DNA of 64,000 nucleotides from Tubulanus polymorphus (taxonomy: Eukaryota > Animalia > Nemertea). Under the pieces are notes generated by a model, which was not told where the DNA came from, did no database searches, and saw only the letters and a program-made list of their open reading frames with translations. Each line of letters begins with the position of its first letter. Position 1 is the stretch's first letter. Below are positions 1,359 to 52,384 of the stretch, in pieces. The translations under genes were made by a program, and so were the position numbers. Location of the stretch: NCBI RefSeq assembly GCF_964204645.1, contig NC_134032.1, forward strand, positions 682,001-746,000, read 5' to 3'.

Positions 1359-3733
1359 CTAAATCGGGGGAGTTAATACAGTGTTTATATTGTAGAATCT
1401 CAGTGAGTTCTGATCATCACTGATATCACGGTGATGGATAACTACAGTGTCACTGTTACACACGTGATGTATGTCACATGTCTCACTGTCTGTAGAGTTC
1501 AGTATTATACGCGGGTGATCTATAAACCCCTCATCATTATATCTGATACTAATAACAGATCCTCTGTTACCAGTATTAGAGTATACCGATAGCAATACTT
1601 GATTATCATTAATGACACACGGGAATCCCATACATGGATCAAATGTCAGTCCGCAATCGTTCATAGTAATAAAACTGATCAATTCTGCTTCTGGTTTTAG
1701 ATACAATAATCTGCGTGTACGCAAACAGTAGATAAATATACGTCCCCGCGTGTCGACATCGAAACCGTAGATATAAAAGTAATCTCCATCCGGGAGCTGA
1801 TAGTTCTTCACTCGATTTCTATCGATCAATCTGTTTTCAGGGTTTTCTAATAAACGTAAAACATGAATTTCACTATCTCCTGTCTGTATAAAGATATTGT
1901 GATCACGGATTACGAAGGATCCACAGACTCCAGGCAGGAGATCAGTGATATTTTCTTCGAAGAGTTTTTTCTGATTTTTATATTTTCTCAGGATGTATTC
2001 CCTGTTTTTCCTCACGACCACAAACAGAAACCCGTTACCATCAGCAGCGAGTCCATGTATCCAACCATCAATCTCTATGTATCCCTGTATATTATCATCA
2101 TTCACACTATATATACAATTAGTGGAGCGATACTGCGCACATATAACACGTGACTGTTCACCCTCGTGTTCACCGGGTATTGACGTCACCATGTTGAGTA
2201 CGAAATCTGTATCTACCTGTTTATTGACCGTCAATGAATCGATTAATTCTACACGTAGCCGCGTGACGTCATCGATATATCCCTCCAGTTTATCAATTCT
2301 CCCTATGACGTCCTCAGTAGATCGCTCCGCTCTATCCATTCTCTCTATGACATCATCAACAGATCCCTCCACATTTCCAATTCTCTCTTTGACGTCATCA
2401 GTAGATCTTTCCACTTTATAATTTCTCCGTATGACGTCATCATTGATATTAGTCAGTTTTGTCTCCAATGCTTTAAGTTGCTGTTCAGTACAGCATTGAT
2501 TCAGCCTCTCTTCAAGTTGTTGTTCAGTACAGAACCGGTTCAGCCTCTCTTCAAGTTGTTGTTCAGTACAGAACCGGTTCTGCCTCTCTTCAAGTTGTTG
2601 TTCAGTACAGAACCGGTTCTGCCTCTCTTCAACTATTTCTATAGTGTGTTTCAATTGACAGAATTGATTTTCTAGATTATCGTGAAACTGTCTGACATGT
2701 TCTATAAAAGACCGATGTCGTTCATCAATGTCTGATCGAACTGTTCGGGTTTCACTGATCGACACACCTACTGAATTTACTTTATACAAATTATGTGCCT
2801 GATTTGAAGCGATCACATGAAGCCCCGACACTAATGAATGCGGGGCTTGTTGAAGATGTGTTTTTAAGTTCCGCGCTGTTTCGTCGTCTGAGCATTTAAC
2901 GATAAACACATGAATCGCTGGACAGTGATTAAACCCGATATGATGATTCGGTATCTCTACACCAGGGGGCGCTTCTCTCCATTCTAATTTCACCTGAAAT
3001 TGAAAAATATAGTTATATTAAGGGTGAAACTTAAGGGGGGGGGGGGGGTTGCTGATACAATTTCATCGGAACTTATTGCAGCTCGAGCGCTGTAGGCATG
3101 GACGGGCGAGGCGGAGGTCTAACCCCCAGAAAGTTTTTGGAATTTTGCTGCTTTTAAAAATTATTTCCTGCAATCTCGGAACAGTAACGGAACTCGGTTG
3201 GCTTCATGTCGTAGTAAATAAGATAAAAGATACGATCAGGGTGGAATTTTTCCGGGGGGAGAGGGGTGCACCAACTGCACCTGCCCCCCCCCCACCTACG
3301 GGCCTGAAATTGTTTGCTGTACGAGACTAGAATTGTTGGATTCTTGATATTCGTATTCTGCGAATCGGGGTCTGGGTTTGGTATATTATTCAACATTCAA
3401 GTAAAGAAATCAGACATATATATTTCTATCGGGTCCGAACGATGTATTGTTTACCTCGTCAAACGGCATCATTTGTACATTTATAACTTGTTCCGTATAG
3501 ATCGCTTTCAGTTTTACTTCGATAATAGTCTCTAATTCTTCTGTCCACATCTGTATCGGTAGTTGTAATTGATTACCAGCAGTAGCGATCAGATCACATT
3601 CTAAATCGAACAACGGTTGAAAGTAATAATTCTGTATTGTTCTGTAGTCGTTGTCGTGATCCGACCAAACACCGATCTTGCGACCACGATAAGAAACTGC
3701 GAGCTCGAATCTGTACGTAGAATTAGACGCCAT
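1359..3733 (-). CDS. Array gene copy 1: N-terminal alpha/beta domain + coiled-coil stalk (4 x 13-aa repeat) + NHL-like beta-propeller; exons 3733-3455 and 2993-1359 (~637 aa)
   Basis: Exon 1 ORF MASNSTY...PFDE ends at GAG|GTAAAC (3455/3454). The large ORF starts right after atttttcaatttcag|GTG (2994/2993). Both are phase 0, so they join in frame. The C-terminus has NHL-like blade motifs GLAADGNGFLFVV and GFDVDTRGRIFIY. Confidence 0.85.
2475..2630 (-). repeat. Coding 39-bp tandem repeat (EERLNRFCTEQQL) x4; 3-5 copies in the other paralogs (e.g. 15564-15758, x5)
   Basis: Exact 39-bp periodicity of aagttgttgttcagtacagaaccggttcagcctctcttc. Confidence 0.95.
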
Positions 3734-5680
3734 GTTGTTTTTGGGCGTTTTCTAACTGTAGATTGTGCAGGCGTGACCTCCTCACGCGCGCGGGTCTCAC
3801 GCGTCTTGCCATAAAGTTAAAACCACACGGCACTGATAACACGAAACAGCGATACAAATACAATACTCATCAAATGATGAATAGACATGCTTTGAGATCG
3901 CTTGTTCTGAACGGTGTCTCCTGGTGAGCAGGAGAACCTCTCTTCCAGTGTCGACGCGGTTCCTAACGTGATACCGGCAAGGCTACTGTGCGAAGCGAGG
4001 ATTCATTGATGATCCATAGGTGTCGCTAAGTGGTACGGGGTTTCCGCTATTCAATGTCCTCGCACATTTTTTTTATTCGAGTAGACTTTTACGATTATTA
4101 AATCAATTTTTAGTTAAATGAATACCATACCCTCCTGAACAAAATCTCAAGTAGAATACCCTGTAGTAAATTCGAGTCCGTTTGTCGTTTGGGCTGACTA
4201 TACCAGGAAATATATAGTGGACTTCGGAGCTTTCTCGGTAACTGATTGCTGTTAATGCTTGCTGTTGACTGAACTCACCTGACCAGTATATTTTAGATGT
4301 CACATATCCCAGGGACAATAACTGATTATAACTTATCCATGAGGCTTCTCTCGAGAATTGGCTGGTTAGACAAGTGAACCGATTAGGATACTTAGGTCGG
4401 GTTTAGGCTTTAAAACCGACACAGATTGGAACATCGTTACAGCAAACAGTACTCCGTATACCAAGTACGTTTTATCAAACGAGGTTAACGAAAATATAGA
4501 TATCTACTTATTTTATTATATTATTATTATCATTATTATTATTACGAGCTACAATTTTGCAATTGATTGGTGGTAACAATCTTCATTTTCTTAAATCAAT
4601 CATATCAATCCGGGTTTCTAATGTGATAAAGAAAAACCCATTAAAGCAGGTTTTTTGCGGCACGTTTTTTACTGCGAGGCCGCATGTTCGATGTACTTAA
4701 GGGTTAAACGAATATGATACCTTGTTTCTCCGCAGCGGCCGGGTCATTTTTGTAAAATATGATAAAATTTATAACCAGCACATTCCTATAGCTGCCGGGT
4801 CTGTTACGGGTAAGATCGATCACGATTTCAAAAAAAAAAGTAATGTACAGGGTAGATAGGCGGCCAGCCGGGTCAACTTTACAGCTCAGCGGGGCGGAGA
4901 AACAAAGTATACATTTCTAGCCTTAGTGAAAATATATTCTCTGTTGCGTCTTTTAATGTTAGTTTCATTAAAATCGATTGAAGTCAGTTTCGATACACTA
5001 GACCTGACCTAGTTGTCACTTAGTGGAAAAACTGGCGCGAATTTTTGGGCCGATCTTTCATCCTCGAGGGATCTATTAAAATAGTAAACATTTAAATCCC
5101 CCATAATCGATCTATCGCTCTTGAACTACTGTCGTTCTGATAAAGGACAGTTCCATAAAAAATTCACACTCGACCAAAATTGAGTCCAATTTAAACAATT
5201 TTCTCTAATTCAAGACGCTTAGGCGCTACATCCTAGCAGGCGCATAGCGCGCTTCGACAAAACGCAATCCGTGCATTTCGACTAAACTCTCTTTGAGACC
5301 GAACCGATATCGGATAACATAAAATTACAGGTCTGGTCTGGCGTTAGCGCAAGCGTCTGAAATTGGGCACCCTATATACCCTTAAAAATATGTATTTTAC
5401 TTTGAAAAATATAGATAAATAGCTGAAGCACTGAATCCGGTGAATATTGTGGGGTCTGATCCCTTAACGACCTCCCCTGACCCCCAGGGGTAAAAGTTTT
5501 GATAGTAGCAGGTTTTTTTTCTGAAAGCCCATCTCGTGTTACATGAACCCGAATTTGTTACCAATTTCTAACATTCGGCGCCTATAGAAGTATTTTTATG
5601 CGTTTTGCCGGCTGACTACGAGTAGCATTTCATTGTATACACGTCGTTCTCGAACCCTAGAATCGGTTTAGACTTCGGCT

Positions 5681-8050
5681 CTAAATCGGGGGAGTCAATA
5701 CAGTGTTTATATTGTAGAATCTCAGTGACTCCTGATCATCACTGATATCCCAGTGATGGATAACTACAGTGTTACTGTTTAACACGTGATGTATGTCACC
5801 TGTCCTACTGTCTGTAGAGTTCAGTATTATACGCGGGTGATCTATAAACCCCTCATCATTATATCTGATACTAATAACAGCACCTCTGTTAACATGTTGA
5901 CCACAGTATACCGATAGTAATACTTGATTATCATTAATGACACACGGGAATCCTGCATATGGACCAAATGTCAGTCCGCAATCGTTCATATAAATAAAAC
6001 TGATCAATTCTGCTTCTGGTGTTAGATACAATAATCTGTGTGTACGCAAACAGTAGATAAATATACGTCCCCGCGTGTCGAAATCGAAACTGTTGATAGA
6101 GTAAAATCCATCCGGGAGCTGATAGTTCTTCACTCGGCATCTATCAATCAATCTGTTTTCAGGGTTTTCTAATAAACGTAAAACATGAATTTCACTATCT
6201 CCTGTCTGTATAAAGATATTGTGATCACGGATTACGAAGGATCCACAGACTACAGACAGGAGATCAGTGATATTTTCTTCGAAGAGTTTTTCCATATTTT
6301 TATATTTTCTCAGGATGTATTCACTGTTTTTCCTCACGACCACAAACAGAAACCCGTTACCATCAGCAGCGAGTCCTTGTATCCAACCATCAATCTCTAT
6401 GTATCTCTGTATATTATCATCATTCACACTATATATATAACCAGTGGAGTTATGGCTCGCACATATAACACGTGACTGTTCACCCTCGTGTTCACCGGGT
6501 ATTGACGTCACCAGGCTGAGGAAGTCTGTATCTACCCGTTTATTGACCGTCAATGAATCGATTATTCCTACACGTAGCCGCGTGACGTCATCGATACATC
6601 CCTCCAGTTTATCAATTCTCCCTATGACGTCCTCAGTAGATCGTTCCGCTCTATCCATTCTCTCTATGACATCATCAACAGATCCCTCCACATTTCCAAT
6701 TCTCTCTTTGACGTCATCAGTAGATCTTTCCACTTTATAATTTCTCCGTATGACGTCATCATTTATATTAGTCAGTTTTGTCTCCAATGCTTTAAGTTGT
6801 TGTTCAGTACAGAACCGGTTCAGCCTCTCTTCAAGTTGTTGTTCAGTACAGAACCGGTTCTGCCTCTCTTCAAGTTGTTGTTCAGTACAGAACCGGTTCA
6901 GCCTCTCTTCAAGTTGTTGTTCAGTACAGAACCGGTTCAGCCTCTCTTCAACTGTTTCTATAGTGTGTTTCAATTGACAGAATTGATTTTCTAAATTATC
7001 GTGAAACTGTCTGACATGTTCTATAAAAGACCGATGTCGTTCATCAATGTCTGATCGAACTGTTCGGGTTTCACTGATCGACACACCTACTGAATTTACT
7101 TTATACAAATTATGTGCCTGATTTGAAGCGATCACATGAAGCCCCGACACTAATGAATGCGGGGCTTGTTGAAGATGTGTTTTTAAGTTCCGCGCTGTTT
7201 CGTCGTCTGAGCATTTAACGATAAACACATGAATCGCTGGACAGTGATTAAACCCGATATGATGATTCGGTATCTCTACACCAGGGGGCGCTTCTCTCCA
7301 TTCTAATTTCACCTGAAATTGAAAAATATAGTTATATTAAGGGTGAAACTTAAGGGGGGGGGGGGGTTGCTGATACAATTTCATCGGAACTTATTGCAGC
7401 TCGAGCGCTGTAGGCATGGACGGGCGAGGCGGAGGTCAAACCCCCAGAAAGTTTTTGGAATTTTGCTGCTTTTAAAAATTATTTCCTGCAATCTCGGAAC
7501 AGTAACGGAACTCGGTTGGCTTCATGTCGTAGTAAATAAGATAAAAGATACGATCAGGGTGGAATTTTTCCGGGGGGAGAGGGGTGCACCAACTGCACCT
7601 GCCCCCCCCCACCTACGGGCCTGAAATTGTTTGCTGTACGAGACTAGAATTGTTGGATTCTTGATATTCGTATTCTGCGAATCGGGGTCTGGGTTTGGTA
7701 TATTATTCAACATTCAAGTAAAGAAATCAGACATATATATTTCTATCGGGTCCGAACGATGTATTGTTTACCTCGTCAAACGGCATCATTTGTACATTTA
7801 TAACTTGTTCCGTATAGATCGCTTTCAGTTTTACTTCGATAATAGTCTCTAATTCTTCTGTCCACATCTGTATCGGTAGTTGTAATTGATCACCAGCAGT
7901 AGCGATCAGATCACATTCTAAATCGAACAACGGTTGAAAGTAATAATTCTGTATCGTTCTGTAGTCGTTGTCGTGATCCGACCAAACACCGATCTTGCGA
8001 CCACGATAAGAAACTGCGAGCTCGAATCTGTACGTAGAATTAGACGCCAT
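5681..8050 (-). CDS. Array gene copy 2; exons 8050-7772 and 7312-5681 (~636 aa; 4 x 13-aa repeat)
   Basis: Same splice signals as copy 1; intact ORFs. Confidence 0.85.
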
Positions 8051-10079: not shown

Positions 10080-12484
10080 CTAAATCGGGGGAGTCAATAC
10101 AGTGTTTATATTGTAAAATCTCAATGAGTGCTGTAGGCCTATATTACTGTAATCCCAGTGTCGGATAACTACAGCGTTACTGTTTAACACGTGATGTATG
10201 TCACGTGTCACACTGTCTGTAGAGTTCAGTATTATACGCGGGTGATCTATAAACCCCTCATCATTATATCTGATACTAATAACAGCACCTCCGTTAACAC
10301 GGTGATCAGAGTATACCGATAGCAATACTTGATTATCATTAATGACACACGGGGATCCTGCATATGGACCAAATGTCAGTCCGCAATCGTGCATATAAAT
10401 AAAACTGATCAGTTCTGCTTCTGGTGTTAGATACAATAATCTGTGTGTATGCGAACAGTAGATAAATATACGTCCCCGCGTGTCCACATCGAAACTGTTG
10501 ATATACTTGTAATATCCACCCGGGAGCTGATAGTTCTTCACTCGGCATCTATCAATCAATCTGTTTACAGGGTTTTCTCGTAAAGGTAAAACATGAATGT
10601 CACTATCTCTATCTCCTGTCTGTATATAGATATTGTGATCACGGACCACTAAGGATCCACAGACTCTAGCCAGGAGATCAGTGATATTTTCTTCGAAGAG
10701 TTTTCTCTGATTTTTATATTTTCTCAGGATGTATTCACTGTTTTTCCACACGACCACAAACAGAAACCCGTTATTATCAGTATCGAGTCCTTGTATCCTA
10801 CCATCAATCTCTATGTATCTCTGTATATTATCATCATTCACACTATATATATAACCAGTGGAGTCATAGCGCGCACATATAACACGTGACTGTTCACCCT
10901 CGTGTTCACCAGGTAGTGACGTCACCAGGTGGGGTCTGAAATCTGTATCTACCCGTTTATTGACCGTCAATGAATCGATTATTCCTACACGTAGCCGCGT
11001 GACGTCATCGATAAATCCCTCCAGTTTATCAATTCTCCCTATGACGTCCTCAGTAGATCGTTCCGCTCTATCCATTCTCTCTATGACATCATCAACAGAT
11101 CCCTCCATATTTCCAATTCTCTCTTTGACGTCATCAGTAGATCTTTCCACTTTATAATTTCTCCGTATGAAGTCATCATTGATATTAGTCATTTTTGTCT
11201 CCAATGCTTTAAGTTGTTGTTCAGTACAGAACCGGTTCAGCCTTTCTTCAAGTTGTTGTTCAGTACAGCATTGGTTCAGCCTCTCTTCAAGTTGTTGTTC
11301 AGTACAGAACCGGTTCAGCCTCTCTTCAAGTTGTTGTTCAGTACAGAACCGGTTCAGCCTCTCTTCAACTGTTTCTATATTGTGTTTCAATTGACAGAAT
11401 TGATTTTCTAAATTATCGTGAAACTGTCTGACATGTTCTATAAAAGAACTATGTCGTTCATCAATGTCTGATCGAACTGTTCGGGTTTCACTGATCGGCA
11501 CACCTACTGAATTTACTTTATACAAATTATGTGCAGATGTCTGGTTTGAAGCGATCACATGAAGCCCCGACACTAATGAATGCGGGGCTTGTTGAAGATG
11601 TGTTTTTAAGTTTCGCGCTGTTTCATCGTCTGAGCATTTAACGATAAACACATGAATCGCCGGACAGTGATTAAACCCGATATGATGATTCGGTATCTCT
11701 ACACCAGGGGGCGCTTCTCTCCATTCTAGTTTCACCTGGAATTGAAAAATATAGTTATATTAAGGGTGAAACTTAAGGGGGGGTTGCTGATACAATTTCA
11801 TCGGAACTTATTGCAGCTCGAGCGCTGTAGGCATGATCGGGGAGGCGGAGGTTTAACCCCCAGAAAGTTTTTAGAATTTTGCTGCTTTTAAAAATGATTT
11901 CCTGCAATCTCGGAACAGTAACGGAACTCGGTTGGCTTCATGCCGTAGTAAATAAGACATAAGATACGATCAGGGTGGAATTTTTCCGGGGGGAGAGGGG
12001 TGCACCAACTGCACCTGTCCCCCCCCCCCCCACCTACGGTACTGAAATTGTTTGCTGTACGAGACTAGAATTGTTGGATTCTTGATATTCGTATTCTGCG
12101 AATCGGGGTCTGGGTTTGGTATATTATCAACTCTAAATTTTTATTCAACATTCAAGTAAAGAAATCAGACATATTTCTATCGGGTCCGAACGATGTATTG
12201 TTTACCTCGTCAAACGGCATCATTTGTACATTTATAACTTGTTCCGTATAGATCGATTTCAGTTCACATTTTATGTGGTTCTCTAATTCTTCTGTCCACA
12301 TCTGTATCGGTAGTTGTAATTGATCACCAGCAGTAGCGATCAGATCACATTCTAAATCGAACAACGGTTGAAAGTAATAATTCTGTATTGTTCTGTAGTC
12401 GTTGTCGTGATCCGACCAAACACCGATCTTGCGACCACGATAAGAAACTGCGAGCTCGAATCTGTACGTAGAATTAGACGCCAT
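10080..12484 (-). CDS. Array gene copy 3; exons 12484-12206 and 11735-10080 (~644 aa; 4 x 13-aa repeat)
   Basis: Donor GAG|GTAAAC and acceptor ttcaattccag|GTG conserved; intact ORFs. Confidence 0.85.
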
Positions 12485-14438: not shown

Positions 14439-16869
14439 CTAAATCGGGGGAGTCAATACAGTGTTTATATTGTAGAATCTCACTGAGTTCTGATCATCAC
14501 TGTTATCACGGTGATGGATAACTACAGTGTCACTGTCAAACACGTGATGTATGTCATATGTCACACTGTCTGTAGAGTTCAGTATTATACGCGGGTGATC
14601 TATAAACCCCTCATCATTATATCTGATACGGATAACAGCACCTCCGTTAACACGGTAATCAGAGTATACCGATAGCAATACTTGATTATCATTAATAACA
14701 CACGGGAATCCTGCATATGGAACAAATGTCAGTCCGCAATCGTTCATATAAATAAAACTGATCAATTCTGCTTCTGGTGTTAGATACAATAATCTGCGTG
14801 TACGCATACAGTAGATAAACATACGTCCCCGCGTGTCGACATCTAAACTGTCGATATTTAAGTAATCTCCATCCGGGAGCTGATATTTCTTCACTCGGCA
14901 TCTATCAATCAATCTGTTTACAGGGTTTTCTCGTAAAGGTAAAACATGAATGTCACTATCTCTATCTCCTGTCTGTATATAGATATTGTGATCACGGACC
15001 ACTAAGGATCCACAGACTCCAGGCGGGAGATCAGTGATATTTTCTTCGAAGAGTTTTTCCATATTTTTATATTTTCTCAGGATGTATTCACTGTTTTTCC
15101 ACACGACCACAAACAGAAACCCGTTATTATCAGTATCGAGTCCTTGTATCCTACCATCAATATCTATGTATCTCTGTATATTATCATCATTCACACTATA
15201 TATATAATCAGTCGAGCACCACTCCGCACATATAACACGTGACTGTTCACCCTCGTGTTCACCGGGTATTGACGTCATCAGGTGGGGTCTGAAATCTGTA
15301 TCTACCCGTTTATTGACCGTCAATGAATCGATTATTCCTACACGTAGCCGCGTGACGTCATCGATAAATCCCTCCAGTTTATCAATTCTCCCTATGACGT
15401 CCTCAGTAGATCGTTCCGCTCTATCCATTCTCTCTATGACATCATCAACAGATCCCTCCACATTTCCAATTCTCTCTTTGACGTCATCAGTAGATCTTTC
15501 CACTTTATATTTTCTCCGTATGAAGTCATCATTGATATTAGTCAGTTTTGTCTCCAATGCTTTAAGTTGTTGTTCAGTACAGAACCGGTTCAGCCTTTCT
15601 TCAAGTTGTTGTTCAGTACAGCATTGGTTCAGCCTCTCTTCAAGTTGTTGTTCAGTACAGAACCGGTTCAGCCTCTCTTCAAGTTGTTGTTCAGTGCAGA
15701 ACCGGTTCTGCCTCTCTTCAAGTTGTTGCTCAGTACAGAACCGGTTCAGCCTCTCTTCAACTGTTTCTATATTGTGTTTCAATTGACAGAATTGATTTTC
15801 TAAATTATCGTGAAACTGTCTGACATGTTCTATAAAAGAACTATGTCGTTCATCAATGTCTGATCGAACTGTTCGGGTTTCACTGATTGGCACACCTACT
15901 GAATTTACTTTATACAAATTATGTGCAGATGTCTGGTTTGAAGCGATCACATGAAGCCCCGACACTAATGAATGCGGGGCTTGTTGAAGATGTGTTTTTA
16001 AGTTTCGCGCTGTTTCATCGTCTGAGCATTTAACGATAAACACATGAATCGCTGGACAGTGATTAAACCCGATATGATGATTCGGTATCTCTACACCAGG
16101 GGGCGCTTCTCTCCATTCTAGTTTCACCTGGAATTGAAAAATATAGTTATATTAAGGGTGAAACTTAAGGGGGGGTTGCTGATACAATTTCATCGGAACT
16201 TATTGCAGCTCGAGCGCAGCATGATCGGGGAGGCGGAGGTTTAACCCCCAGAAAGTTTTTAGAATTTTGCTGCTTTTAAAAATGATTTCCTGCAATCTCG
16301 GAACAGTAACGGAACTCGGTTGGCTTCATGCCGTAGTAAATAAGACACAAGATACGATCAGGGTGGAATTTTTCCGGGGGGAGAGGGGTGCACCAACTGC
16401 ACCTGCCCCCCCCCCCACCTACGGTACTGAAATTGTTTGCTGTACGAGACTAGAATTGTTGGATTCTTGATATTCGTATTCTGCGAATCGGGGTCTGGGT
16501 TTGGTATATTATCAACTCTAAATTTTTATTCAACATTCAAGTAAAGAAATCAGACATATTTCTATCGGGTCCGAACGATGTATTGTTTACCTCGTCAAAC
16601 GGCATCATTTGTACATTTATAACTTGTTCCGTATAGATCGATTTCAGTTCACATTTTATGTGGTTCTCTAATTCTTCTGTCCACATCTGTATCGGTAGTT
16701 GTAATTGATCACCAGCAGTAGCGATCAGATCACATTCTAAATCGAACAACGGTTGAAAGTAATAATTCTGTATTGTTCTGTAGTCGTTGTCGTGATCCGA
16801 CCAAACACCGATCTTGCGACCACGATAAGAAACTGCGAGCTCGAATCTGTACGTAGAATTAGACGCCAT
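14439..16869 (-). CDS. Array gene copy 4; exons 16869-16591 and 16127-14439 (~655 aa; 5 x 13-aa repeat)
   Basis: Conserved splice signals; intact ORFs. Confidence 0.85.
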
Positions 16870-18900: not shown

Positions 18901-21245
18901 CTAAATCGGGGGAGTTAATACAGTGTTTATATTGTAGAATCTCAGTGAGTTCTGATCATCACTGTTATCACGGTGTCGGATAACTACAGTGTTACTATTT
19001 AACACGTGATGTATGCGATACGTCATACTGTCTGTAGAGTTCAGTATTATACGCGGGTGATCTATAAACCCCACATCATTATATCTGATACTGATAACAG
19101 CACCTCTGTTAACACTGTTATCAGAGTATACCGATAGCAATACTTGATTATCATTAATGACACACGGGGATCCTGCATATGGATCAAATGTCAGTCCGCA
19201 ATCGTGCATATAAATAAAACTGATCAGTTCTGCTTCTGCTGTTAGAAACAATAATCTGCGTGTACGCATACAGTAGATAAATATACGTCCCCGCGTGTCC
19301 ACATCGAAACTGTTGATATACTTGTAACCTCCACCCGGGAGCTGATATTTCTTCACTCGATTTCTATCAATCAATTTGTTTTCAGGATTTTCTCGTAAAC
19401 GTAAAACACGAATGACACTACCTGTCTGTATAAAGATATTGTGATCACGGACCACTAAGGATGCACAGACTCCAGACATGAGATCAGAGATATTTTCTTC
19501 GAAGAGTTTTCTCTGATTTTTATATTTTCTCAGGATGAATTCACTGTTTTTCCCCACGACCACAAACAGAAACCCGTTACTATCAGCAGCGAGTCCTTGT
19601 ATCCAACCATCAATCTCTATGTATCTCTGTATATTATCATCATTCACACTATATATATAATCAGTGGAGCCCCAGTCCGCACATATAACACGTGACTGTT
19701 CACCCTCGTGTTCACCGGGTATTGACGTCACCAGGCCGAGGAAGTCTGTATCTACCTGTTTATTGACCGTCAATGAATCGATTATTCCTACACGTAACCG
19801 CGTGACGTCATCGATACATCCCTCCAGTTTATCAATTCTCCCTATGACGTCCTCAGTAGATCGTTCCGCTCTATCCATTCTCTCTATGACATCATCAACA
19901 GATCCCTCCACATTTCCAATTCTCTCTTTGACGTCATCAGTAGATCTTTCCACTTTATAATTTCTCCGTATGACGTCATCATTGATATTAGTCAGTTTTG
20001 TCTCCAATGCTTTAAGTTGCTGTTCAGTACAGCATTGGTTCAGCCTCTCTTCAAGTTGTTGTTCAGTACAGAACCGGTTCAGCCTCTCTTCAAGTTGTTG
20101 TTCAGTACAGAACCGGTTCAGCCTCTCTTCAACTGTTTCTATATTGTGTTTCAATTGACAGAATTGATTTTCTAAATTATCGTGAAACTGTCTGACATGT
20201 TCTATAAAAGAACTATGTCGTTCATCAATGTCTGATCGAACTGTTCGGGTTTCACTGATCGGCACACCTACTGAATTTACTTTATACAAATTATGTGCAG
20301 ATGTCTGGTTTGAAGCGATCACATGAAGCCCCGACACTAATGAATGCGGGGCTTGTTGAAGATGTGTTTTTAAGTTTCGCGCTGTTTCATCGTCTGAGCA
20401 TTTAACGATAAACACATGAATCGCTGGACAGTGATTAAACCCGATATGATGATTCGGTATCTCTACACCAGGGGGCGCTTCTCTCCATTCTAGTTTCACC
20501 TGGAATTGAAAAATATAGTTATATTAAGGGTGAAACTTAAGGGGGGGTTGCTGATACAATTTCATCGGAACTTATTGCAGCTCGAGCGCTGTAGGCATGA
20601 TCGGGGAGGCGGAGGTTTAACCCCCAGAAAGTTTTTAGAATTTTGCTGCTTTTAAAAATGATTTCCTGCAATCTCGGAACAGTAACGGAACTCGGTTGGC
20701 TTCATGCCGTAGTAAATAAGACATAGATACGATCAGGGTGGAATTTTTCCGGGGGGAGAGGGGTGCACCAACTGCACCTGTCCCCCCCCCCCACCTACGG
20801 TACTGAAATTGTTTGCTGTACGAGACTAGAATTGTTGGATTCTTGATATTCGTATTCTGCGAATCGGGGTCTGGGTTTGGTATATTATCAACTCTAAATT
20901 TTTATTCAACATTCAAGTAAAGAAATCAGACATATTTCTATCGGGTCCGAACGATGTATTGTTTACCTCGTCAAACGGCATCATTTGTACATTTATAACT
21001 TGTTCCGTATAGATCGATTTCAGTTCACATTTTATGTGGTTCTCTAATTCTTCTGTCCACATCTGTATCGGTAGTTGTAATTGATCACCAGCAGTAGCGA
21101 TCAGATCACATTCTAAATCGAACAACGGTTGAAAGTAATAATTCTGTATTGTTCTGTAGTCGTTGTCGTGATCCGACCAAACACCGATCTTGCGACCACG
21201 ATAAGAAACTGCGAGCTCGAATCTGTACGTAGAATTAGACGCCAT
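18901..21245 (-). CDS. Array gene copy 5; exons 21245-20967 and 20499-18901 (~625 aa; 3 x 13-aa repeat)
   Basis: Conserved splice signals; intact ORFs. Confidence 0.85.
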
Positions 21246-23279: not shown

Positions 23280-25610
23280 CTAAATCGGGGGAGTTAATAC
23301 AGTGTTTATATTGTAGAATCTCAGTGACTTCTGATCATCACTGTTATCCCAGTGTCGGATAGCTACAGTGTTACTGTTTAACACGTGATGTATGTCACAT
23401 GTCACACAGTCTGTAGAGTTCAGTATTATACGCGGGTGATCTATAAACCCCTGATTATTATATCTGATACTGATAACAGCACCTCTGTTAACACAGGGAT
23501 CAGAGCATACCGATAGTAATATACGATCATCATTAATAACACACGGGTGTCCTGCACATGGATTAAATTCTAGTGCACAATCGTTCATATTGATAAAACT
23601 AATCTCGTTCGCATCTGCTGTTAGAAACAGTAATCTATGAGTCGTTTCACAGTAAAGAAACATCCGTCCCTTTGAATCGACATCGAAACAGTTGATATTA
23701 CCGTAACCTCCATCCGGGAGCTGATATTTCTTCACTCGATTTCTATTTATCAAACTGTTAACAGGGTTTTCTAATAAACGTAAAACATGAACGTCTCTTC
23801 CTAACTGTATATAGATATTGTAATCACGGATCACTAAGGATACACAGACTCCAGGCAGGAGATCATTGATATTTTCTTCAAACAGTTTTTGCTTATCTTT
23901 ATATTTTCTCAGGATGAATTTCCTATTTTTTTTTACGAGCGCAAACAGATCCCCGTTACTATCAGTAGCGAGTCCTTTTACACCACCGCCATCAATCTTT
24001 ATGTATCTATCAAATTCATCATCATCATAATCATAATCATCGTCATCATTCATGCAATATATATAATTAGTGGCGCTGAACTCGGCACATATAACACGTG
24101 ACTGTTCACCCGCATGTTCACCAGGTAGTGACGTCATCAGGTCGGGTGTGAAGTCTGTATCTATCAGTTTACTGATCATCAATGGCGCGCATTCTACACG
24201 TAGCCGCGTGACGTCATCAATATGTATCTCTAATTCATCAATTCTCCTTTTGACATCATCAGTAATTTTGGATAGTTTTGCCCCCATATCATCATTGATA
24301 TTGGTCAGTTTTTCCTCAAGTTGTTGTTCAGTACAGCACCGGTTCAGCCTGATCTCTTCAAGTTGCTGTTCAGTACAGAACCGGTTCAGCCTCTCTTCAA
24401 GTTGTTGCTCAGTGCAGAACCGGTTCAGCCTCTCTTCAAGTTGCTGTTCAGTACAGAACCGGTTCAGCCTCTCTTCAAGTTGTTGTTCAGTGCAGCACCG
24501 GTTCAGCTTCTCTTCAACTGTTTCTATATTGTGTTTCAATTGACAGAATTGATTTTCTAGATTATCGTGAAACTGTCTGACATGTTCTATAAAAGAACTA
24601 TGTCGTTCATCAATGTCTGATCGAACTGTTCGGGTTTCACTGATCGACACACCTACTGAATTTACTTTATACAAATTATGTGCAGATGCCTGGTTTGAAG
24701 CGATCACATGAAGCCCCGACACTAATGAATGCGGGGCTTGTTGAAGATGTGTTTTTAAGTTTTGCGCTGTTTCATCGTCTGAGCATTTAACGATAAACAC
24801 ATGAATCGCTGGACAGTGATTAAACCCGATATGATGATTCGGTATCTCTACACCAGGGGGCGCTTCTCTCCATTCTAGTTTCACCTGGAATTGAAAAATA
24901 TAGTTATATTAAGGGTGAAACTTAAGGGGGGGGTGCTGATACAATTTTCATCTGATTTATTGCAGCTCGAGCGCTGTAGGCATGATCGGGGAGGCGGAGG
25001 TTTAACCCCCAGAAAGTTTTTAGAATTTTGCTGCTTTTAAAAATGATTTCCTGCAATCTCGGAACAGTAACGGAACTCGGTTGGCTTCATGCCGTAGTAA
25101 ATAAGACATAAGATACGATCAGGGTGGAATTTTTCCGGGGGGAGAGGGGTGCACCAACTGCACCTGCCCCCCCCCCACCTACGGAACTGAAATTGTTTGC
25201 TGTACGAGACTAGAATTGTTGGATTCTTGATATTCGTATTCTGCGAATCGGTCTGGGTTTGGTATATTATTCAACATTCAAGTAAAGAAATCAGACATAT
25301 TTCTATCGGGTCCGAACGATGTATTGTTTACCTCGTCAAACGGCATCATTTGTACATTTATAACTTGTTCCGTATAGATCGCTTTCAGTTTTACTTCGAT
25401 AATAGTCTCTAATTCTTCTGTCCACATCTGTATCGGTAGTTGTAATTGATTACCAGCAGTAGCGATCAGATCACATTCTAAATCGAACAACGGTTGAAAG
25501 TAATAATTCTGTATTGTTCTGTAGTCGTTGTCGTGATCCGACCAAACACCGATCTTGCGACCACGATAAGAAACTGCGAGCTCGAATCTGTACGTAGAAT
25601 TAGACGCCAT
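23280..25610 (-). CDS. Array gene copy 6 (most divergent; shortened stalk, acidic loop insertion); exons 25610-25332 and 24884-23280 (~627 aa; 5 x 13-aa repeat)
   Basis: Conserved splice signals; ORF intact despite many substitutions and in-frame indels. Confidence 0.85.
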
Positions 25611-27641: not shown

Positions 27642-30070
27642 CTAAATCGGGGGAGTTAATACAGTGTTTATATTGTAGAATCTCAGTGAGTTCTGATCAT
27701 CACTGTTATCCCAGTGACGGATAGCTACAGTGTTACTGTTTAACACGTGATGTATGTCACATGTCACACTGTCTGTAGAGTTCAGTATTATACGCGGGTG
27801 ATCTATAAACCCCACATCATTATATCTGATACGGATAACAGCACCTCTGTTAACACGGTAATCAGAGCATACCGATAGCAATACTTGATTATCATTAATA
27901 ACACACGGGAATCCTGCATATGGAACAAATGTCAGTCCGCAATCGTTCATATAAATAAAACTGATCAATTCTGCTTCTGGTTTTAGATACAATAATCTGC
28001 GTGTACGCAAACAGTAGATAAATATACGTCCCCGCGTGTCGAAATCGAAACTGTTGATAGAGTAAAATCCATCCGGGAGCTGATATTTCTTCACTCGGCA
28101 TCTATCAATCAATCTGTTTTCAGGGTTTTCTAATAAACGTAAAACATGAATTTCACTATCTCCTGTCTGTATAAAGATATTGTGATCACGGATTACGAAG
28201 GATCCACAGACTACAGACAGGAGATCAGTGATATTTTCTTCGAAGAGTTTTTCCATATTTTTATATTTTCTCAGGATGTATTCACTGTTTTTCCTCACGA
28301 CCACAAACAGAAACCCGTTACCATCAGCAGCGAGTCCATGTATCCAACCATCAATCTCTATGTATCTCTGTATATTATCATCATTCACACTATATATATA
28401 ACCAGTGGAGTTATGGCTCGCACATATAACACGTGACTGTTCACCCTCGTGTTCACCGGGTATTGACGTCATCAGGTGGGGTCTGAAATCTGTATCTACC
28501 CGTTTATTGACCGTCAATGAATCGATTATTCCTACACGTAGCCGCGTGACGTCATCGATAAATCCCTCCAGTTTATCAATTCTCCCTATGACGTCCTCAG
28601 TAGATCGTTCCGCTCTATCCATTCTCTCTATGACATCATCAACAGATCCCTCCACATTTCCAATTCTCTCTTTGACGTCATCAGTAGATCTTTCCACTTT
28701 ATAATTTCTCCGTATGAAGTCATCATTGATATTAGTCATTTTTGTCTCCAATGCTTTAAGTTGTTGTTCAGTACAGAACCGGTTCAGCCTTTCTTCAAGT
28801 TGTTGTTCAGTACAGCATTGGTTCAGCCTCTCTTCAAGTTGTTGTTCAGTACAGAACCGGTTCAGCCTCTCTTCAAGTTGTTGTTCAGTGCAGAACCGGT
28901 TCTGCCTCTCTTCAAGTTGTTGCTCAGTACAGAACCGGTTCAGCCTCTCTTCAACTGTTTCTATATTGTGTTTCAATTGACAGAATTGATTTTCTAAATT
29001 ATCGTGAAACTGTCTGACATGTTCTATAAAAGAACTATGTCGTTCATCAATGTCTGATCGAACTGTTCGGGTTTCACTGATTGGCACACCTACTGAATTT
29101 ACTTTATACAAATTATGTGCAGATGTCTTGTTTGAAGCGATCACATGAAGCCCCGACACTAATGAATGCGGGGCTTGTTGAAGATGTGTTTTTAAGTTTC
29201 GCGCTGTTTCATCGTCTGAGCATTTAACGATAAACACATGAATCGCTGGACAGTGATTAAACCCGATATGATGATTCGGTATCTCTACACCAGGGGGCGC
29301 TTCTCTCCATTCTAGTTTCACCTGGAATTGAAAAATATAGTTATATTAAGGGTGAAACTTAAGGGGGGGTTGCTGATACAATTTCATCGGAACTTATTGC
29401 AGCTCGAGCGCAGCATGATCGGGGAGGCGGAGGTTTAACCCCCAGAAAGTTTTTAGAATTTTGCTGCTTTTAAAAATGATTTCCTGCAATCTCGGAACAG
29501 TAACGGAACTCGGTTGGCTTCATGCCGTAGTAAATAAGACACAAGATACGATCAGGGTGGAATTTTTCCGGGGGGAGAGGGGTGCACCAACTGCACCTGC
29601 CCCCCCCCCCCCCCCCCACCTACGGTACTGAAATTGTTTGCTGTACGAGACTAGAATTGTTGGATTCTTGATATTCGTATTCTGCGAATCGGGGTCTGGG
29701 TTTGGTATATTATCAACTCTAAATTTTTATTCAACATTCAAGTAAAGAAATCAGACATATTTCTATCGGGTCCGAACGATGTATTGTTTACCTCGTCAAA
29801 CGGCATCATTTGTACATTTATAACTTGTTCCGTATAGATCGATTTCAGTTCACATTTTATGTGGTTCTCTAATTCTTCTGTCCACATCTGTATCGGTAGT
29901 TGTAATTGATCACCAGCAGTAGCGATCAGATCACATTCTAAATCGAACAACGGTTGAAAGTAATAATTCTGTATTGTTCTGTAGTCGTTGTCGTGATCCG
30001 ACCAAACACCGATCTTGCGACCACGATAAGAAACTGCGAGCTCGAATCTGTACGTAGAGTTAGATGCCAT
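27642..30070 (-). CDS. Array gene copy 7 (terminal copy); exons 30070-29792 and 29321-27642 (~652 aa; 5 x 13-aa repeat)
   Basis: ATG of MASNSTY at 30070; conserved splice signals; intact ORFs. Confidence 0.85.
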
Positions 30071-30226: not shown

Positions 30227-30885
30227 GGACGGGTGGGAGATCCACTCTTCCAGTCTGAACGGTGTCTCCTGACGGGTGTGAGACCCACTCTTCCAGTCTG
30301 AATGGTATCTCCTGACGGGTGGAAGACCCACTCTTCCAGTCTGAACGGTATCTCCTGACGGGTGGGAGATCCACTCTTCCAGTCTGAACGGTGTCTCCTG
30401 ACGGGTGGGAGACCCACTCTTCCAGTCTGAACGGTGTCTCCTGACGGGTAGGAGACCCACTCTTCCAGTCTGAACGGTGTCTCCTGACGGGTGGGAGACC
30501 CACTCTTCCAGTCTGAACGGTGTCTCCTGACGGGTGGGAGACCCACTCTTCCAGTCTGAACGGTGTCTCCTGACGGGTGGGAGATCCACTCTTCCAGTCT
30601 GAACGGTGTCTCCTGACGGGTGGGAGACCCACTCTTCCAGTCTGAACGGTGTCTCCTGACGGGTGGGAGACCCACTCTTCCAGTCTGAACGGTGTCTCCT
30701 GACGGGTGGGAGACCCACTCTTCCAGTCTGAACGGTGTCTCCTGACCGGTGGGAGACCAACTCTTCCAGTCTGAACGGTGTCTCCTGACGGGTGGGAGAC
30801 CCACTCTTCCAGTCTGAACGGTGTCTCCTGACGGGTGGGAGACCCACTCTTCCAGTCTGAACGGTGTCTCCTGACGGGTGGGAGA
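30227..30885. repeat. 43-bp minisatellite, ~15 copies, upstream of array copy 7
   Basis: Unit ccactcttccagtctgaacggtgtctcctgacgggtgggagac repeated head-to-tail with no spacers. Confidence 0.95.
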
Positions 30886-34508: not shown

Positions 34509-37500
34509 TCAGACGACTGCGGAACCGCTACCAGCGCGGCTGATATTCATATTGCTGACGTATGTCCACGTGTCGCGAGTCGGGTCGTAAACCTCGGCCG
34601 TACGCAGCCGGTTGAATCCGTCGAAACCGCCCATGATGTAGACTTTACCGTCGAAGACGGCGGCGGCCGGCCACGCTCGCGGTGTGTTCATCGCGGCCAT
34701 CGTATCCCACTTCTCCGTTAACGTGTTGTATCTGAAGTAGGAAATAATGACGCAATTCAGAAATCGATTATTTATCGGAACTAGGAGTCAATATTCAACG
34801 CCCCCTGGTGACTCTGATGTATTAAAGACCCCTTTCCAAAGAATACCCCTAATACTAAGTTATTCTACTATTCAACGCCCCCTGGTGACCATATAGAATA
34901 ACTAATGTCCTTAAAACTCACCATAATCATAGATGATGTTATGAGCTTTCCAATTGATTGTGATAACACAATATGCTTAGGTATCAATATAATGTGGAAA
35001 AACTTTTTCCAACCTACGAATGAGTACTGCTGACACCAAGATGGCCGCCAATTGTGTCATAATTGGCTGATCAAAAATACCTGGTATAAAACATCCCTTT
35101 CCAAAGAATACCCATCACAAATTGTAATGAGAAATGGCAAACCAGTAGAAAGCTACAGGACTCAGAATTAGGGCCAAAATTGACATTTTTGGGCACTAAA
35201 GAGGTCATAGGACGGCCATCTTGAGTCCAATCGACTCAATTTTTCTTAAGGTGATGGGCCCTTGGGGAATTCACATATATCTTAAAAATCAAGGTATTTG
35301 ATCAAAGCGTCTTCAAAATTTCCCTCGAAAACTTGAAAAATGTGTAAAAAGTGCTGATTTAGGCGAACAACAATGGCTGCCAGTCGGCCATCTTGAATCT
35401 GAACGAGCCAGATTTCGGGCTGAAGATGCGTCTAGGGTAGATACATCTATAAACCAAATAAAGCCTGCTGGGACTCAAGAAAAAACAAATGACGATAGAA
35501 TCTGTTAAGAAAGGCTTCGGTTAATCTCGCCGTACTCTGACTCAATTGGGACCCGCCCGAAAAAGGCCAGTTTTCATTCAGCCAAAATCTTCATCCTTCG
35601 TACATACCGTTCGACAAGGTCTGAATATCTGTCGGTGTGTCGAAACCGTCCTCCGATCGCGAATATGAAATATTCGATCGCGACTAGCACGAGACCCGAG
35701 CGAGCTTTCGACATTTCAGCGGTGAACGTCCATTCCTGATGTTCGGGGTCGTAACATTCGACGCTCGCGCGGTCCGTATGAAACGTTTTATCGTAACCAC
35801 CTGAAAAAACAAATCAATAAATCTACAATTCGTCGATCTAAAAGTCTAAGCCCGAAACGGTTACGTTTGAATTGTTGTCCTTATTGAGAACATGGAGTCC
35901 TAACCGATAGCAATTACGCCAAAAATTTTAGTTAAACTTTTTCGTGAAACTGGGCACTAAATTTCACCAGAGATATTACTAATTGAAAATGAACTACTAA
36001 CACCGGACATTAGACATTTTATCAGCACACTTTCAAAAACTGATCGTCCACACTTCACATGTGTTCAGTGCTTCACCTGAGACATTTCTAATTGAAAATG
36101 AACTACAAACACCAGATATTAGACATTTTACCAGCACACTTTCATAAACTGATCGTCCACACTTCACATGTGTTCAGTGCTTCACTTGAGACATTTTCAA
36201 TTGAAAATGAACTACAAACACCAGATATTAGACATTTTATCAGCACACTTTCAAAAACTGATCGTCCACACTTCACATGTGTTCAGTGCTTCACCTGAGA
36301 CATTTTTAATTGAAAATGAACTACAAACACCAGATATTAGACATTTTATCAGCACACTTTCAAAAACTGATCGTCCACACTTCACATGTGTTCAGTGCTT
36401 CACCTGAGACATTTTCAATTGAAAATGAACTACAAACACCAGATATTAGACATTTTATCAGCACACTTTCAAAAACTGATCGTCCACACTTCACATGTGT
36501 TCAGTGCTTCACCTGAGACATTTTTAATTGAAAATGAACTACAAACACCGGACATTAGACATTTTATCAGCACACTTTCAAAAACTGATCGTCCACACTT
36601 CACATGTGTTCAGTGCTTCACCTGAGACATTATTAATTGAAAATGAACTACAAACACCAGACATTAGACATTTTATCAGCACACTTTCAAAAACTGATCG
36701 TCCACACTTCACATGTGTTCAGTGCTTCACCTGAGACATTATTAATTGAAAATGAACTACAAACACCAGACATTAGACATTTTATCAGCACACTTTCAAA
36801 AACTGATCGTCCACACTTCACATGTGTTCAGTGCTTCACCAGAGATATTTCTAATTGAAAATGAACTACAAACACCAGACATTAGACATTTTATCAGCAC
36901 ACTTTCAAAAACTGATCGTCCACACTTCACATGTGTTCAGTGCTTCACCTGAGACATTATTAATTGAAAATGAACTACAAACACCAGACATTAGACATTT
37001 TATCAGCACACTTTCAAAAACTGATCGTCCACACTTCACATGTGTTCAGTGCTTCACCTGAGACATTATTAATTGAAAATGAACTACAAACACCAGACAT
37101 TAGACATTTTATCAGCACACTTTCAAAAACTGATCGTCCACACTTCACATGTGTTCAGTGCTTCACCTGAGACATTTCTAATTGAAAATGAACTACAAAC
37201 ACCAGACATTGTTATATTCATAATACACAGTTAGATATACACGTATAAGCTAACTTACCAGCAACGTAAAGCCGACCTTCACAGACGGCTGCTCCGGCTC
37301 CCGCGCGCTTCTTCTTCATACTCGACACGTAGCACCAGGAATCCGTTTGAGGACAATAACGTTCTACTAAATCAAAACTACAATTACGATTCTCACCTCC
37401 TAAAAAAAAACAAAATCAAACAGTTAGTGCTCGGATACCAAATTAAACCCACACAACTGTGGAACTGGATCCGGAGTCAAATTAAACCCACACAACTGTG

Positions 37501-40500
37501 AAACTGGATTCAGAGTCAAATTAAACCCACATAACTTTGGAACTGGATCCAGAGTCAAATTAAACCTACACAACTGTGGAACTGGATTCTAAGTCAAATT
37601 AAACCCACACAACTGTGGAACTGGATCCTAAGTCAAATTAACCTCACACAACTGTGGAACTGGGTTCGGAGTCAAATTAAACCCACTCAACTGTGGAACT
37701 GGGTTCAGAGTCAAATTAAACCCACACAACTGTGGAACTCTAAATAAGCACACAAGAATGTGTAACTATCATCCACAGTGAAATAGACGAGATGAAATGG
37801 ATAATTGTAAGCTGATTGATATATATTAACCTATGGCGTATAGATATCCACCGAATGCGACTGTCGCGATGAAAGACCGCGGCATTTTCATATCGCACTT
37901 GTTCGTCCAATCTTTCAGTATCGGGTCGTAGCACTCGACGTTGTGCAGATAAAGCGTGTCTTCGTTCTCGCCGGGCACGGCGCGTTCCCCGCCGATCGTG
38001 TACATCAGCCCGCGCAGCGTCGCGGCCCCGACCGCCGTACGAGGGTGCTTCATACTACCCTGAAATATATACATCACTCGACGTTACTTATCAATAATAA
38101 TAATAATAATATTAATAATAATAATAATAATGATAATAATAATAATAATAAGGCTAAAAATAATTGATACCTTGTTTCTCCGCTCTGCTGAGCTTAAATG
38201 TTGACCCGGCCGGCCGCCTATCTACCCTATACATTACTTTTTTTAAAATCGTGATCAATTTCACCATAACAGACCCGGCCGCTATAGAAATGAACTGTTT
38301 ATAAATTTTATAATGATTTTACAAAAATGACCCGGCCGCTGCGGAGAAACAAGGTATCATTTTTGTTTAGCCTATTAATGTCTCTTTATTTTGTACAAAA
38401 ACAAACTACTGGATTCAAAGTTACGTGAGGGCTACACGACTTAGCAGATGCAGTAATGGTTGATTAGGTCTTTTGTCTCATTTTACGAATATATCCAATT
38501 AATGAGAGCTGGATATCCGGAACAATGGTTTGGAATAGACCGTAGAAAAATTCGTCAATTTCCCTTCCCTTCGATTTCCAGGATTTCTTTTCTTTTAGAT
38601 TCCCAGAATTTTCCGAAACTCTGTTTCCCTGGATTTCTTTTCTTTTAGATTCCCAGAATTTTCCGAAACTCTATTTTCCTGGATTTCTTTTTTTAGATTC
38701 CCAGAATTTTCCGAAACTCTGTTTTGCTCGATTTCTTTTTTTAGATTCCCAGAATTTTCCGAAACTCTGTTTCCCTGGATTTCTTTTCTTTTAGATTCCC
38801 AGAATTTTCCAAAACTCTGTTTTCCTGGATTTCTTTTTTTAGATTCTCAGAATTTTCCGAAACTCTGTTTTCCTGGATTTCTTTTTTTAGATTCCCAGAA
38901 TTTTCCGAAACTCTGTTTTGCTCGATTTCTTTTTTTAGATTCCGAGAATTTTCCGAAACTCTGTTTTGCTCGATTTCTTTTTTTAGACTCCCAGAATTTT
39001 CCGAAACTCTGTTTCCCTGGATTTCTTTTCTTTTAGATTATCAGAATTTTTCAAAACTCTGTTTCCCTGGATTTATTTTTCTTAGATTCCCAGAATTTTC
39101 CGAAACTGTAGCCGGCGATTTGTGAAATAATAAACAAACCATCGGTATCCACTGGTCGCGGACTACGTCGTAACGCTCCATGCTGCTCAACTGACTAGCG
39201 ACACTAGTCCGTCCGCCGACCACGAATATGCACTGCGGCTGCGCGCGCGGGCGGATCGTCGCCAACGCGTTGTTGTCCGTTTTGACGCGCATCGCCATGG
39301 CGATCACGTTCTGGCACTTCGAACACGCGCGAACGAAGTCGGCGCGAACGACCCGCTCTTCAAGGTAGTCCCTGTCGAGGTGCGCGAGTTTCACGTGCGG
39401 CAGAACGCGGCAGACGTTCGGCGCGCGGCGCAACGGGTCCCAATCGATCCACGACATCGCCGCCTCGAATATCTGCTCCTCGCGCTCGACCTGGATCGAC
39501 TCGCTCTTCAGCAACTCGACGAGCCGCGACTCGGGCAGCTGAAAGAACTCGTCGGAACGCACGACGTCGGCGAAGTGACGTTCGACGTAGTGTCGGGCAG
39601 CAGTTTCTAGTTCGACGCACGAGTAAACATCGGCGAACGATTGAATACCTGGAAATAACGACGACGGAATTAAGAATAATAATAGATTAAAGAATAACGA
39701 TAGATAAAGAATAATAATAATGAAGATCAGACAAGCTGAAATGTTTAATCGCAATAATTTTCACCAAAAATTAGAGTATTTTGACATTAAATATAGTAGT
39801 TCAATCGAAAAGGAACGAGAAGTTTCTGATTCAATGTTTTGATATCTTTGGTTGAATAGTTTGAGCTCTTGTAATGAGTTGAAACTATTGCGGAATAGTA
39901 GAGATTTACCCAGCTATTCTATGCACAAGGCGCGAAAGCTGGTAATTTCTAATGAAATCAGACCTGTTTACTTATTTACCCGAGCAAAAAGTTTAGGAAC
40001 TGCTAGGTTCAGTTTCACGCAAAAATTTAACTAAATTTTGTGATTTTTATTGCTTATTGTTTACTTCATGTTTTCGATGACACTTAAACGTTTAGTGAAA
40101 CAGGAACCAGGGCCCAGTTTCACAAAAACAATTGAGGCCTAAAACAATTTAAGATAAACTGAATTAACTAAGAAATTAAGAGTTAAACCTTTTCGCAAAA
40201 CTGGGCCCTGGGTCCAGTTTCACAAAAATGATTAAGGCCTAAATCGATTTAAGATAAACTGAATTAATGAAGAAATTAAATCGATTTTAGAGTTAAACCT
40301 TTTCGTGAAACTGGGCCCTGGGCTCCGGTGGGAGTTTAGGTGCTGATCTAGAGGTCGGTCTCGGGGCCCGGCACCTCGACCTTCCTATTGAGGCTGCCTA
40401 TTCTTCGTCAAGATAGAGATCATTGAACTAAAACCTGCTGTAAATTTGACAATTTCCTCAATAATATCTAAAACCGATGACCGAACTGTGAGGCTTTTGA

Positions 40501-51825: not shown

Positions 51826-52384
51826 TATATCTGCAACGAAAAATATATATATATATATATGTAACGATTGCGAGACAGTGAAAATTACGCACGCGCTCAC
51901 CGGGGATCGGGGTAATGAAGAAGTAAAAATGGACCGCAAGGGGCATCGAGTATAAATAAAAAATGGGATTGAATATAGCTAAAAACTCCTAGTAGACGCT
52001 TAGTTGAATTTTAATTATTTTTGGGGCCGAAGTTGGCGCAAAAAACGTGAAACTTGGACTTAAAAATGGAGGTCGTCTGCATCCTCTGGTGTCGCTCACT
52101 GACCAGGGATTGAACCTGGGTCTCGTACGTAGAAAACAAATGTGTAATCCAGTAGACAAATAGAACTAGTCCATGTACTACGTCTATACAGCTTGTAGCG
52201 TAACATATGAAAGATCACTTTTTTACCAAATAAATGTTTACTTTGGGTCCTAAGTTACACAATATGTTGACGTATTAACTACTCTAAACCCTAACCCTTT
52301 AGCACGATATCTTTTTACTATATATACATATTTATTTCTCTTTAAACATTTATTTGGATAAAGTTCCACAGCAAACAAGATCTC

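Follow-up and report, generated by a model that had tools for sequence, protein, structure and literature searches.

Diversifying selection on the top face of NHL-fold propellers encoded by a tandem gene array of the nemertean Tubulanus polymorphus, a putative repertoire of cytosolic immune sensors

We found that a tandem gene array in the palaeonemertean ribbon worm Tubulanus polymorphus encodes proteins with a C-terminal six-bladed propeller whose top face differs strongly from copy to copy. That this face evolves under positive diversifying selection, in a gene that is otherwise homogenised, is the evolutionary part of the best explanation, and we hold it with high confidence. The functional part, that the array constitutes a germline repertoire of putative cytosolic immune sensors, we regard as probable. 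The propeller family is real and statistically robust and, since our literature search found no publication on it, apparently previously undescribed.

The analysed stretch of DNA (the window) is 64 kb long, and its first 30 kb are filled by seven head-to-tail units of 4.3-4.5 kb; three further units lie just before the window start, so that the whole array comprises 10. Each window unit contains a minus-strand open frame of 532-562 codons and, 447-472 bp upstream of it, a 93-codon exon with GT-AG ends. The resulting two-exon gene encodes a constant 170-aa N-terminal domain, followed by a predicted repeat coiled coil and then by the six-bladed NHL-fold propeller. For copy 1 this model agrees with the RefSeq protein LOC141909850 (P0001), 637 aa in length (93 + 544 aa); the gene model was searched exon by exon, with the database record P0001 standing for the full-length protein. 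All seven reading frames are intact despite many indels. The parts of copy 1 and the remaining copies are as follows.

1359-2231, minus strand: copy 1, predicted NHL-fold six-bladed beta-propeller, 290 aa plus stop, end of exon 2 (AlphaFold2 model and structural matches)
2264-2632, minus strand: copy 1, coiled-coil-like spacer built from coding repeats of 42 bp (14 aa) and 39 bp (13 aa) (weak coiled-coil-type Pfam matches only)
2701-2993, minus strand: copy 1, start of exon 2, second half of the N-terminal domain (1.7% diversity, AG acceptor)
2994-3454, minus strand: copy 1, GT-AG intron of 461 bp (agrees with the RefSeq model P0001)
3455-3733, minus strand: copy 1, coding exon 1, 93 aa, first half of the N-terminal alpha/beta domain
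5681-8050, minus strand: copy 2 gene (exon 2 5681-7312, exon 1 7772-8050)
10080-12484, minus strand: copy 3 gene (exon 2 10080-11735, exon 1 12206-12484)
14439-16869, minus strand: copy 4 gene (exon 2 14439-16127, exon 1 16591-16869)
18901-21245, minus strand: copy 5 gene (exon 2 18901-20499, exon 1 20967-21245)
23280-25610, minus strand: copy 6 gene, a chimera with an acidic insertion in a bottom loop
27642-30070, minus strand: copy 7 gene (exon 2 27642-29321, exon 1 29792-30070), a mosaic chiefly of copy 2- and copy 4-type segments

Between pairs of copies, diversity reaches 10.2% in the propeller (the final 870 bp of exon 2); the corresponding figure is 1.7% where exon 2 begins, 2.1% for the intron and 1.6% for the 3' flank. 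An assembly artefact was ruled out on the grounds that the propellers of the copies differ by 3.5-17.5% and the flanks are distinct; the 3' flank differs even in the upstream duplicate most similar to copy 1 (99.4%). This duplicate (L002, G000:C8:674735-675604), located in an upstream unit 8.6 kb away, encodes a propeller protein identical to that of copy 1 and shares 99.4% of its DNA over 3.2 kb, which points to duplication or conversion in the very recent past. A 24-bp block of exon 1 (window 3505-3528) exists in two clearly distinct versions, one in copies 1, 2 and 6 and the other in copies 3, 4, 5 and 7, and reads as a conversion tract that alters several residues of the otherwise constant domain. 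The number of 39-bp spacer repeats ranges from 3.2 to 5.2 among the copies; among the paralogs the 13-aa/14-aa coding repeats grow from 3 to dozens (P0016, P0017 and a C11 frame of 2257 aa). Upstream of copy 7, a 43-bp tandem repeat of 15 copies (window 30228-30885) resembles a single stretch (3906-3968) present in the upstream region of every unit, and marks the array edge. The rest of the window includes an exon of an ordinary BTB-BACK-Kelch gene (39041-39754, minus strand; Pfam BACK E 3e-28) and satellite arrays with units of 109, 39 and 75 bp (35963-37210, 37439-37739, 52382-52786 and 52834-53256). The two 39-bp arrays are inverted copies of each other, and the 75-bp unit contains telomere-like hexamers.

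The initial annotation, made from the window sequence, had proposed an NHL propeller whose variable loops lie in the DA and BC connections of the top face, and structure prediction bears this out. The AlphaFold2 model of the propeller, built from a 30-row family alignment (pLDDT 88.9, pTM 0.88), has 24 strands forming six four-stranded blades closed by an N-terminal strand. Structurally it comes closest to the NHL domains of Mei-P26, Brat, NHL-2 and TRIM2/3 (Z 23-24.5, rmsd 2.7-3.2, 8-12% identity), headed by Mei-P26 (Z 24.5, rmsd 2.7, 250 aligned) and Brat (Z 24.0). By its model, then, the domain is an NHL-fold six-bladed beta-propeller. At the sequence level, the Pfam NHL repeat (PF01436) gave zero matches across 30 family members and profile search returned one weak match to an NHL protein (E 7.5e-6); the protein is NHL-fold but stands outside the Pfam NHL and TRIM-NHL families. 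Top and bottom were assigned from the DSSP strand list and strand parity rather than from model coordinates, the direction of all neighbouring strands being fixed by residues 57-75, which carry a typical A-B strand motif. The two classes were defined from structure, independently of variability, and the DA and BC loops form the top face of NHL propellers by definition (PMC4015489). In copy 1 the variable top-face loops are the following.

2193-2207, minus strand: DA loop from the closing strand to blade 1, codons 9-13, hypervariable with an indel
2118-2135, minus strand: BC loop of blade 1, codons 33-38, the most variable of all loops
2055-2072, minus strand: DA loop and start of strand A, blade 2, W57 and H59 variable
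1998-2012, minus strand: BC hairpin of blade 2, codon 74 R/W/G/K
1920-1949, minus strand: DA loop before blade 3, codons 99-101 and 104 variable
1764-1796, minus strand: DA loop before blade 4, codons 150, 152, 155 and 156 variable, with an indel
1713-1724, minus strand: BC loop of blade 4, codons 170-173
1623-1664, minus strand: DA loop before blade 5, codons 198, 201 and 203 variable
1563-1583, minus strand: BC loop of blade 5, codons 219-221, with an indel
1473-1493, minus strand: DA loop and start of strand A, blade 6, codons 250 and 252
1407-1436, minus strand: BC hairpin of blade 6, codons 266-275, with an indel

Every loop variant, codon series and in-frame indel reported in the initial annotation is present in the sequence. 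Propeller codon 35 (window 2127-2129 in copy 1) reads CGC/AAC/GAC/TGC/GGC/AGC/AAC in copies 1-7, codon 38 takes the states AAT/GGT/GAT, codon 250 GAG/AGG/GTG/ATG and codon 252 TGT/GGT/CGT/TAT. The stronger statement, that hypervariability is confined to the top loops, holds as an enrichment only. Across the seven copies, at least three amino acids occur at 32/137 sites of the top half and at 7/141 of the bottom half (p=9e-6), and at 19/60 sites in top loops against 5/52 in bottom loops (p=0.005), so that variation does not scatter over all faces of the propeller. Yet all 117 variable residues are distributed more evenly than the multi-state sites (65 top, 52 bottom), and the bottom half still holds those 52 together with 7 of the 39 multi-state residues. 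The claimed preference for codon positions 1-2 is likewise clear in columns with at least three nucleotide states (18/12/4 by codon position), but weak when all variable nucleotide columns are counted (87/66/67), 70% of which fall at positions 1-2, close to the neutral two thirds.

Codon models, run in our own implementations rather than in PAML or HyPhy and with naive empirical Bayes posteriors, gave an omega of 1.35 for the whole propeller. M2a was favoured over M1a whether a single tree was used (likelihood ratio, LRT, 118.5) or six segment trees (102.3), with 15-19% of sites at an omega of about 8; sites with dN/dS above 1 therefore persist after correction for recombination. With gamma site rates, which absorb locally deep segments, the LRT was 40-53 for the window copies, 47 for paralogs fused to caspases and 28 for the clade of a second array, C12 (C12 site model p=1e-6). 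Because recombination is heavy, null data were simulated in which positive selection was absent and the tree changed every 5-15 codons. In 16 such simulations the LRT reached at most 21.8 (plain) or 9.5 (gamma rates), while the matching six-copy values were 125.7 and 43.6, that is, 4-6 times the null maxima.

Divergence counts place this signal on the top half. Across all seven copies pN/pS is 1.65 in the top half versus 0.78 in the bottom half, and without the divergent copy 6 the values are 2.28 and 0.95. Top-half pN (0.126) exceeds pS (0.055; bootstrap P<0.001), fourfold-site diversity (0.036) and flank diversity (0.017), while in the bottom half pN (0.052) and pS (0.055) are similar; with pN/pS about 1, the bottom half is barely purified in this young array. 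Tree-free minimum change counts in the top loops gave 59 nonsynonymous against 8 synonymous changes (p=0.023). A few bottom or side sites also score as selected, namely Q87, K88 and N139. The same bias recurs elsewhere in the family: multi-state sites are divided 25 vs 3 between top and bottom in nine C12 genes and 24 vs 12 in five caspase fusions, with per-site diversity correlated from clade to clade (rho 0.46 and 0.52). In the caspase fusions pN/pS is 1.94 in the top half and 1.18 in the bottom half. In the C12 clade the bottom half is under strong purifying selection (0.28) and the top half stands at 1.22, a value not significant by bootstrap. The proposal of strong diversifying selection on one surface thus withstands segment trees, site-rate variation and a recombination-only null, as an enrichment and not as confinement.

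Recombination among the copies is evident from the neighbour-incompatibility test (p<0.001; Rm 22-33), and the nearest relative of each copy changes along the propeller. Copy 7 alternates between copy 4-type and copy 2-type segments. In copy 6 a propeller diverged by 16-17.5% lies within flanks diverged by only 1-2%, which identifies it as a chimera, and statistics were therefore run with and without it. DNA-identical loops recur in distant paralogs; for example, two caspase fusions that lie 1.5-3 Mb away contain the blade-1 BC loop found in copy 5. For such single short loops, either gene conversion or recent common ancestry can account. As read from their sequences, the copies are gene-conversion mosaics, and their loops, too, bear the mark of conversion. 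A Sawyer-type tract test, in which shared gap columns acted as a confounder, was left out of this evidence. Samples differ in their repertoires as well. In an independent DNA run from another sample and study, read at about 7x depth, the copy-1-specific bases shared with its duplicate were missing (0 of 87-91 reads at 2084, 2120 and 2192), as was a flank base common to copies 1, 5 and 6 (0/82 reads at 1334). The RNA runs gave no coverage of the gene.

In the genome we counted about 42 uninterrupted propeller frames on seven contigs, plus many fragments. For the upstream units and the long paralogs, the analysis drew on loci and on protein records from the databases. Most of these propellers are preceded by the same N-terminal domain, with spacers of very different length, and P0017 carries two propellers in one protein. 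The second tandem array (G000:C12:2002000-2057000, L021-L029), on another contig, is about 61% identical and varies largely at the same top positions as the window array. In turn, at least five family genes on the window's contig encode a propeller at the N-terminus and a caspase (Peptidase_C14) at the C-terminus. These fusions (L012-L015 and L019, G000:C8 about 0.93-3.72 Mb; P0005-P0007) have propellers 83-90% DNA-identical to the window copies and the same top-face selection pattern. The P0005 caspase domain matches PF00656 with E 3e-67, and the His motif and QACRG were read in P0005 and P0007; caspase identity applies to these paralogs only, the window array genes being devoid of a caspase domain. 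A more distant propeller-caspase fusion, P0018 (LOC141912658), has an altered QACRG motif and is possibly a pseudo-caspase. Three short annotated members on the same contig (P0024, P0026 and P0027) consist of the N-terminal domain and a propeller fragment only, and may be truncated copies or model errors. Outside T. polymorphus no homologs were found by profile search of 1.84 billion representatives or by word searches, an absence that weighs little given how few nemertean proteomes exist.

As for the N-terminal domain, its 170-aa model is of moderate confidence (pLDDT 82.6) and matched no solved fold or family in Pfam, NCBIfam, PDB-sequence, Foldseek, VIA-wide and ESM Atlas searches (best Z 5.7). 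Viral and prokaryotic scans were empty, and no F-box, BTB, SOCS, RING or B-box match was detected by sequence or fold. Hydropathy indicated neither a signal peptide nor a membrane helix, and Pfam and NCBIfam scans of the window proteins and long paralogs revealed no NACHT/NB-ARC NTPase. The top loops, counting loop residues only, carry a net charge of -3 to -10, and only five of their residues are invariant, none of them basic.

Taken as putative cytosolic immune sensors, the array proteins would bind a fast-changing foreign ligand with the propeller top face; since the top loops are net acidic and lack conserved basic residues, this ligand is probably a protein rather than RNA. The coiled coil may dimerise and space the propellers, and the constant N-terminal domain would link binding to an effector of the host. 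Outside the top face the units are homogenised by gene conversion and unequal crossing-over, which also reshuffle loop segments among copies. In the propeller-caspase paralogs ligand binding may activate the protease, which would connect the family with cell death or innate defence, shared sequence being the only link between array genes and fusions. The comparison of the loops with CDRs, drawn in the initial annotation, holds as an analogy only, because the variation is germline and the ligand putative.

Several known systems resemble this organization. In the Podospora anserina HNWD/NWD family (het-d, het-e), positively selected residues occupy the d-a loop and b-c turn on top of the propeller (PMC1805685). 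The nemertean genes share this selection on d-a/b-c loops combined with sequence exchange between genes, the cytosolic multigene character (putative here) and a connection with cell death (which the caspase-fusion paralogs suggest). They differ in lacking NACHT or HET, in their NHL instead of WD40 fold, and in that their blades are not near-identical repeats, exchange occurring between whole-gene paralogs and not repeat units. TRIM5alpha, finTRIM (PMC2657112) and zebrafish NLR-B30.2 (PMC4852459) likewise join a constant N-terminal module to a C-terminal recognition domain with selected loops, and show tandem expansion and recombination or gene conversion; here, however, the recognition domain is a propeller and not B30.2, the N-terminal domain is unclassified and the sensor role is putative. 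Like initiator caspases with their CARD/DED prodomains, the same-contig paralogs P0005 and P0007 join a binding module to Peptidase_C14, but their prodomain is a variable propeller, and the window genes carry no caspase. By analogy, the family would work like fungal HNWD, TRIM5/finTRIM and NLR-B30.2 proteins while belonging to none of these groups.

We also weighed a role as substrate adaptors without signalling: foreign or selfish proteins would be captured by the propeller, and the constant N-terminal domain would bring in a machinery for their degradation. Expanded F-box and BTB adaptor families offer a model for such a role, and a constant N-terminal module with a variable C-terminal binding module, in a putatively cytosolic protein with the same selection pattern, speaks for it. 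The lack of any F-box, BTB, SOCS or RING match in the N-terminal domain and the caspase fusions, which point to signalling, make it unlikely. Conflict within the species in place of pathogens (allorecognition, gamete or meiotic conflict, toxin-antidote systems or transposon control) would leave an identical signature and agrees with the difference in repertoire between samples, and the fungal HNWD propellers do work in allorecognition (PMC1805685). Yet the proteins have no signal peptide or membrane anchor for recognition at the cell surface, and dozens of dispersed paralogs are more readily reconciled with a broad repertoire than with a single polymorphic locus; we consider such a driver improbable.

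Relaxed constraint on surface loops of redundant copies, with heavy gene conversion mimicking positive selection, could draw on the pervasive recombination, which inflates the test as far as the null maximum of 21.8, and on the near-neutral bottom half of the young array. It is largely refuted and very unlikely: the observed LRTs exceed the null maxima severalfold, top-half pN surpasses every neutral measure above, equally exposed bottom loops stay at pN/pS about 1, and the seven frames have remained open despite indels. Just as slim is the chance that the proteins bind RNA in the manner of TRIM-NHL proteins, their top face keeping pace with RNA targets that change. The closest solved folds are indeed RNA-binding NHL domains, and TRIM-NHL proteins (Brat, Mei-P26, LIN-41/TRIM71, TRIM2/3) likewise place a six-bladed propeller C-terminal to a coiled coil and give a colinear structural match (Z 22-24.5). 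The nemertean proteins, however, lack RING/B-box, are 8-14% identical to these, give no Pfam NHL match, and present a variable and, by loop residues counted, acidic top face with no invariant basic residue, whereas that of TRIM-NHL proteins is conserved and basic; the top surface of RNA-binding NHL domains is positive (PMC4015489).

The fixed-third-base codon series might also suggest a targeted mutator. Diversity-generating retroelements (DGRs), with their adenine mutagenesis, are marked by adenine-only variation, a template repeat and a reverse transcriptase. Although several series fit an AAY/AAS template and A is present in 80/105 variable columns at positions 1-2, a DGR-like origin has next to no chance, as 22/89 two-state columns lack A, all twelve substitution types are seen, variation spans 870 bp, selection alone yields first- and second-position change, and neither template repeat nor reverse transcriptase was seen within the window, leaving the array outside the DGRs.

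We return to the reading of the array as a repertoire of putative immune sensors. In its broadest form, which we advance tentatively and at somewhat less than even confidence, the family may represent an undescribed class of animal intracellular immune receptors, in which the variable recognition module is an NHL-fold propeller. Selection and the shuffling of loops would diversify this module in the germ line, and its output would run through a new effector domain or directly through a caspase, the two types having loop variants in common. Little is known of how nemerteans and related invertebrates recognise intracellular pathogens, and this family provides a repertoire that is defined and testable: about 40 propellers on a common scaffold, with some 20-30 variable positions mapped to one of its faces. 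The constant domain is unclassified, and the caspase fusions that occur naturally provide a direct read-out. The propeller would also be a compact natural scaffold for binder engineering. If the proposal is true, T. polymorphus would possess an animal parallel to the fungal HNWD receptors, built on a different propeller fold.
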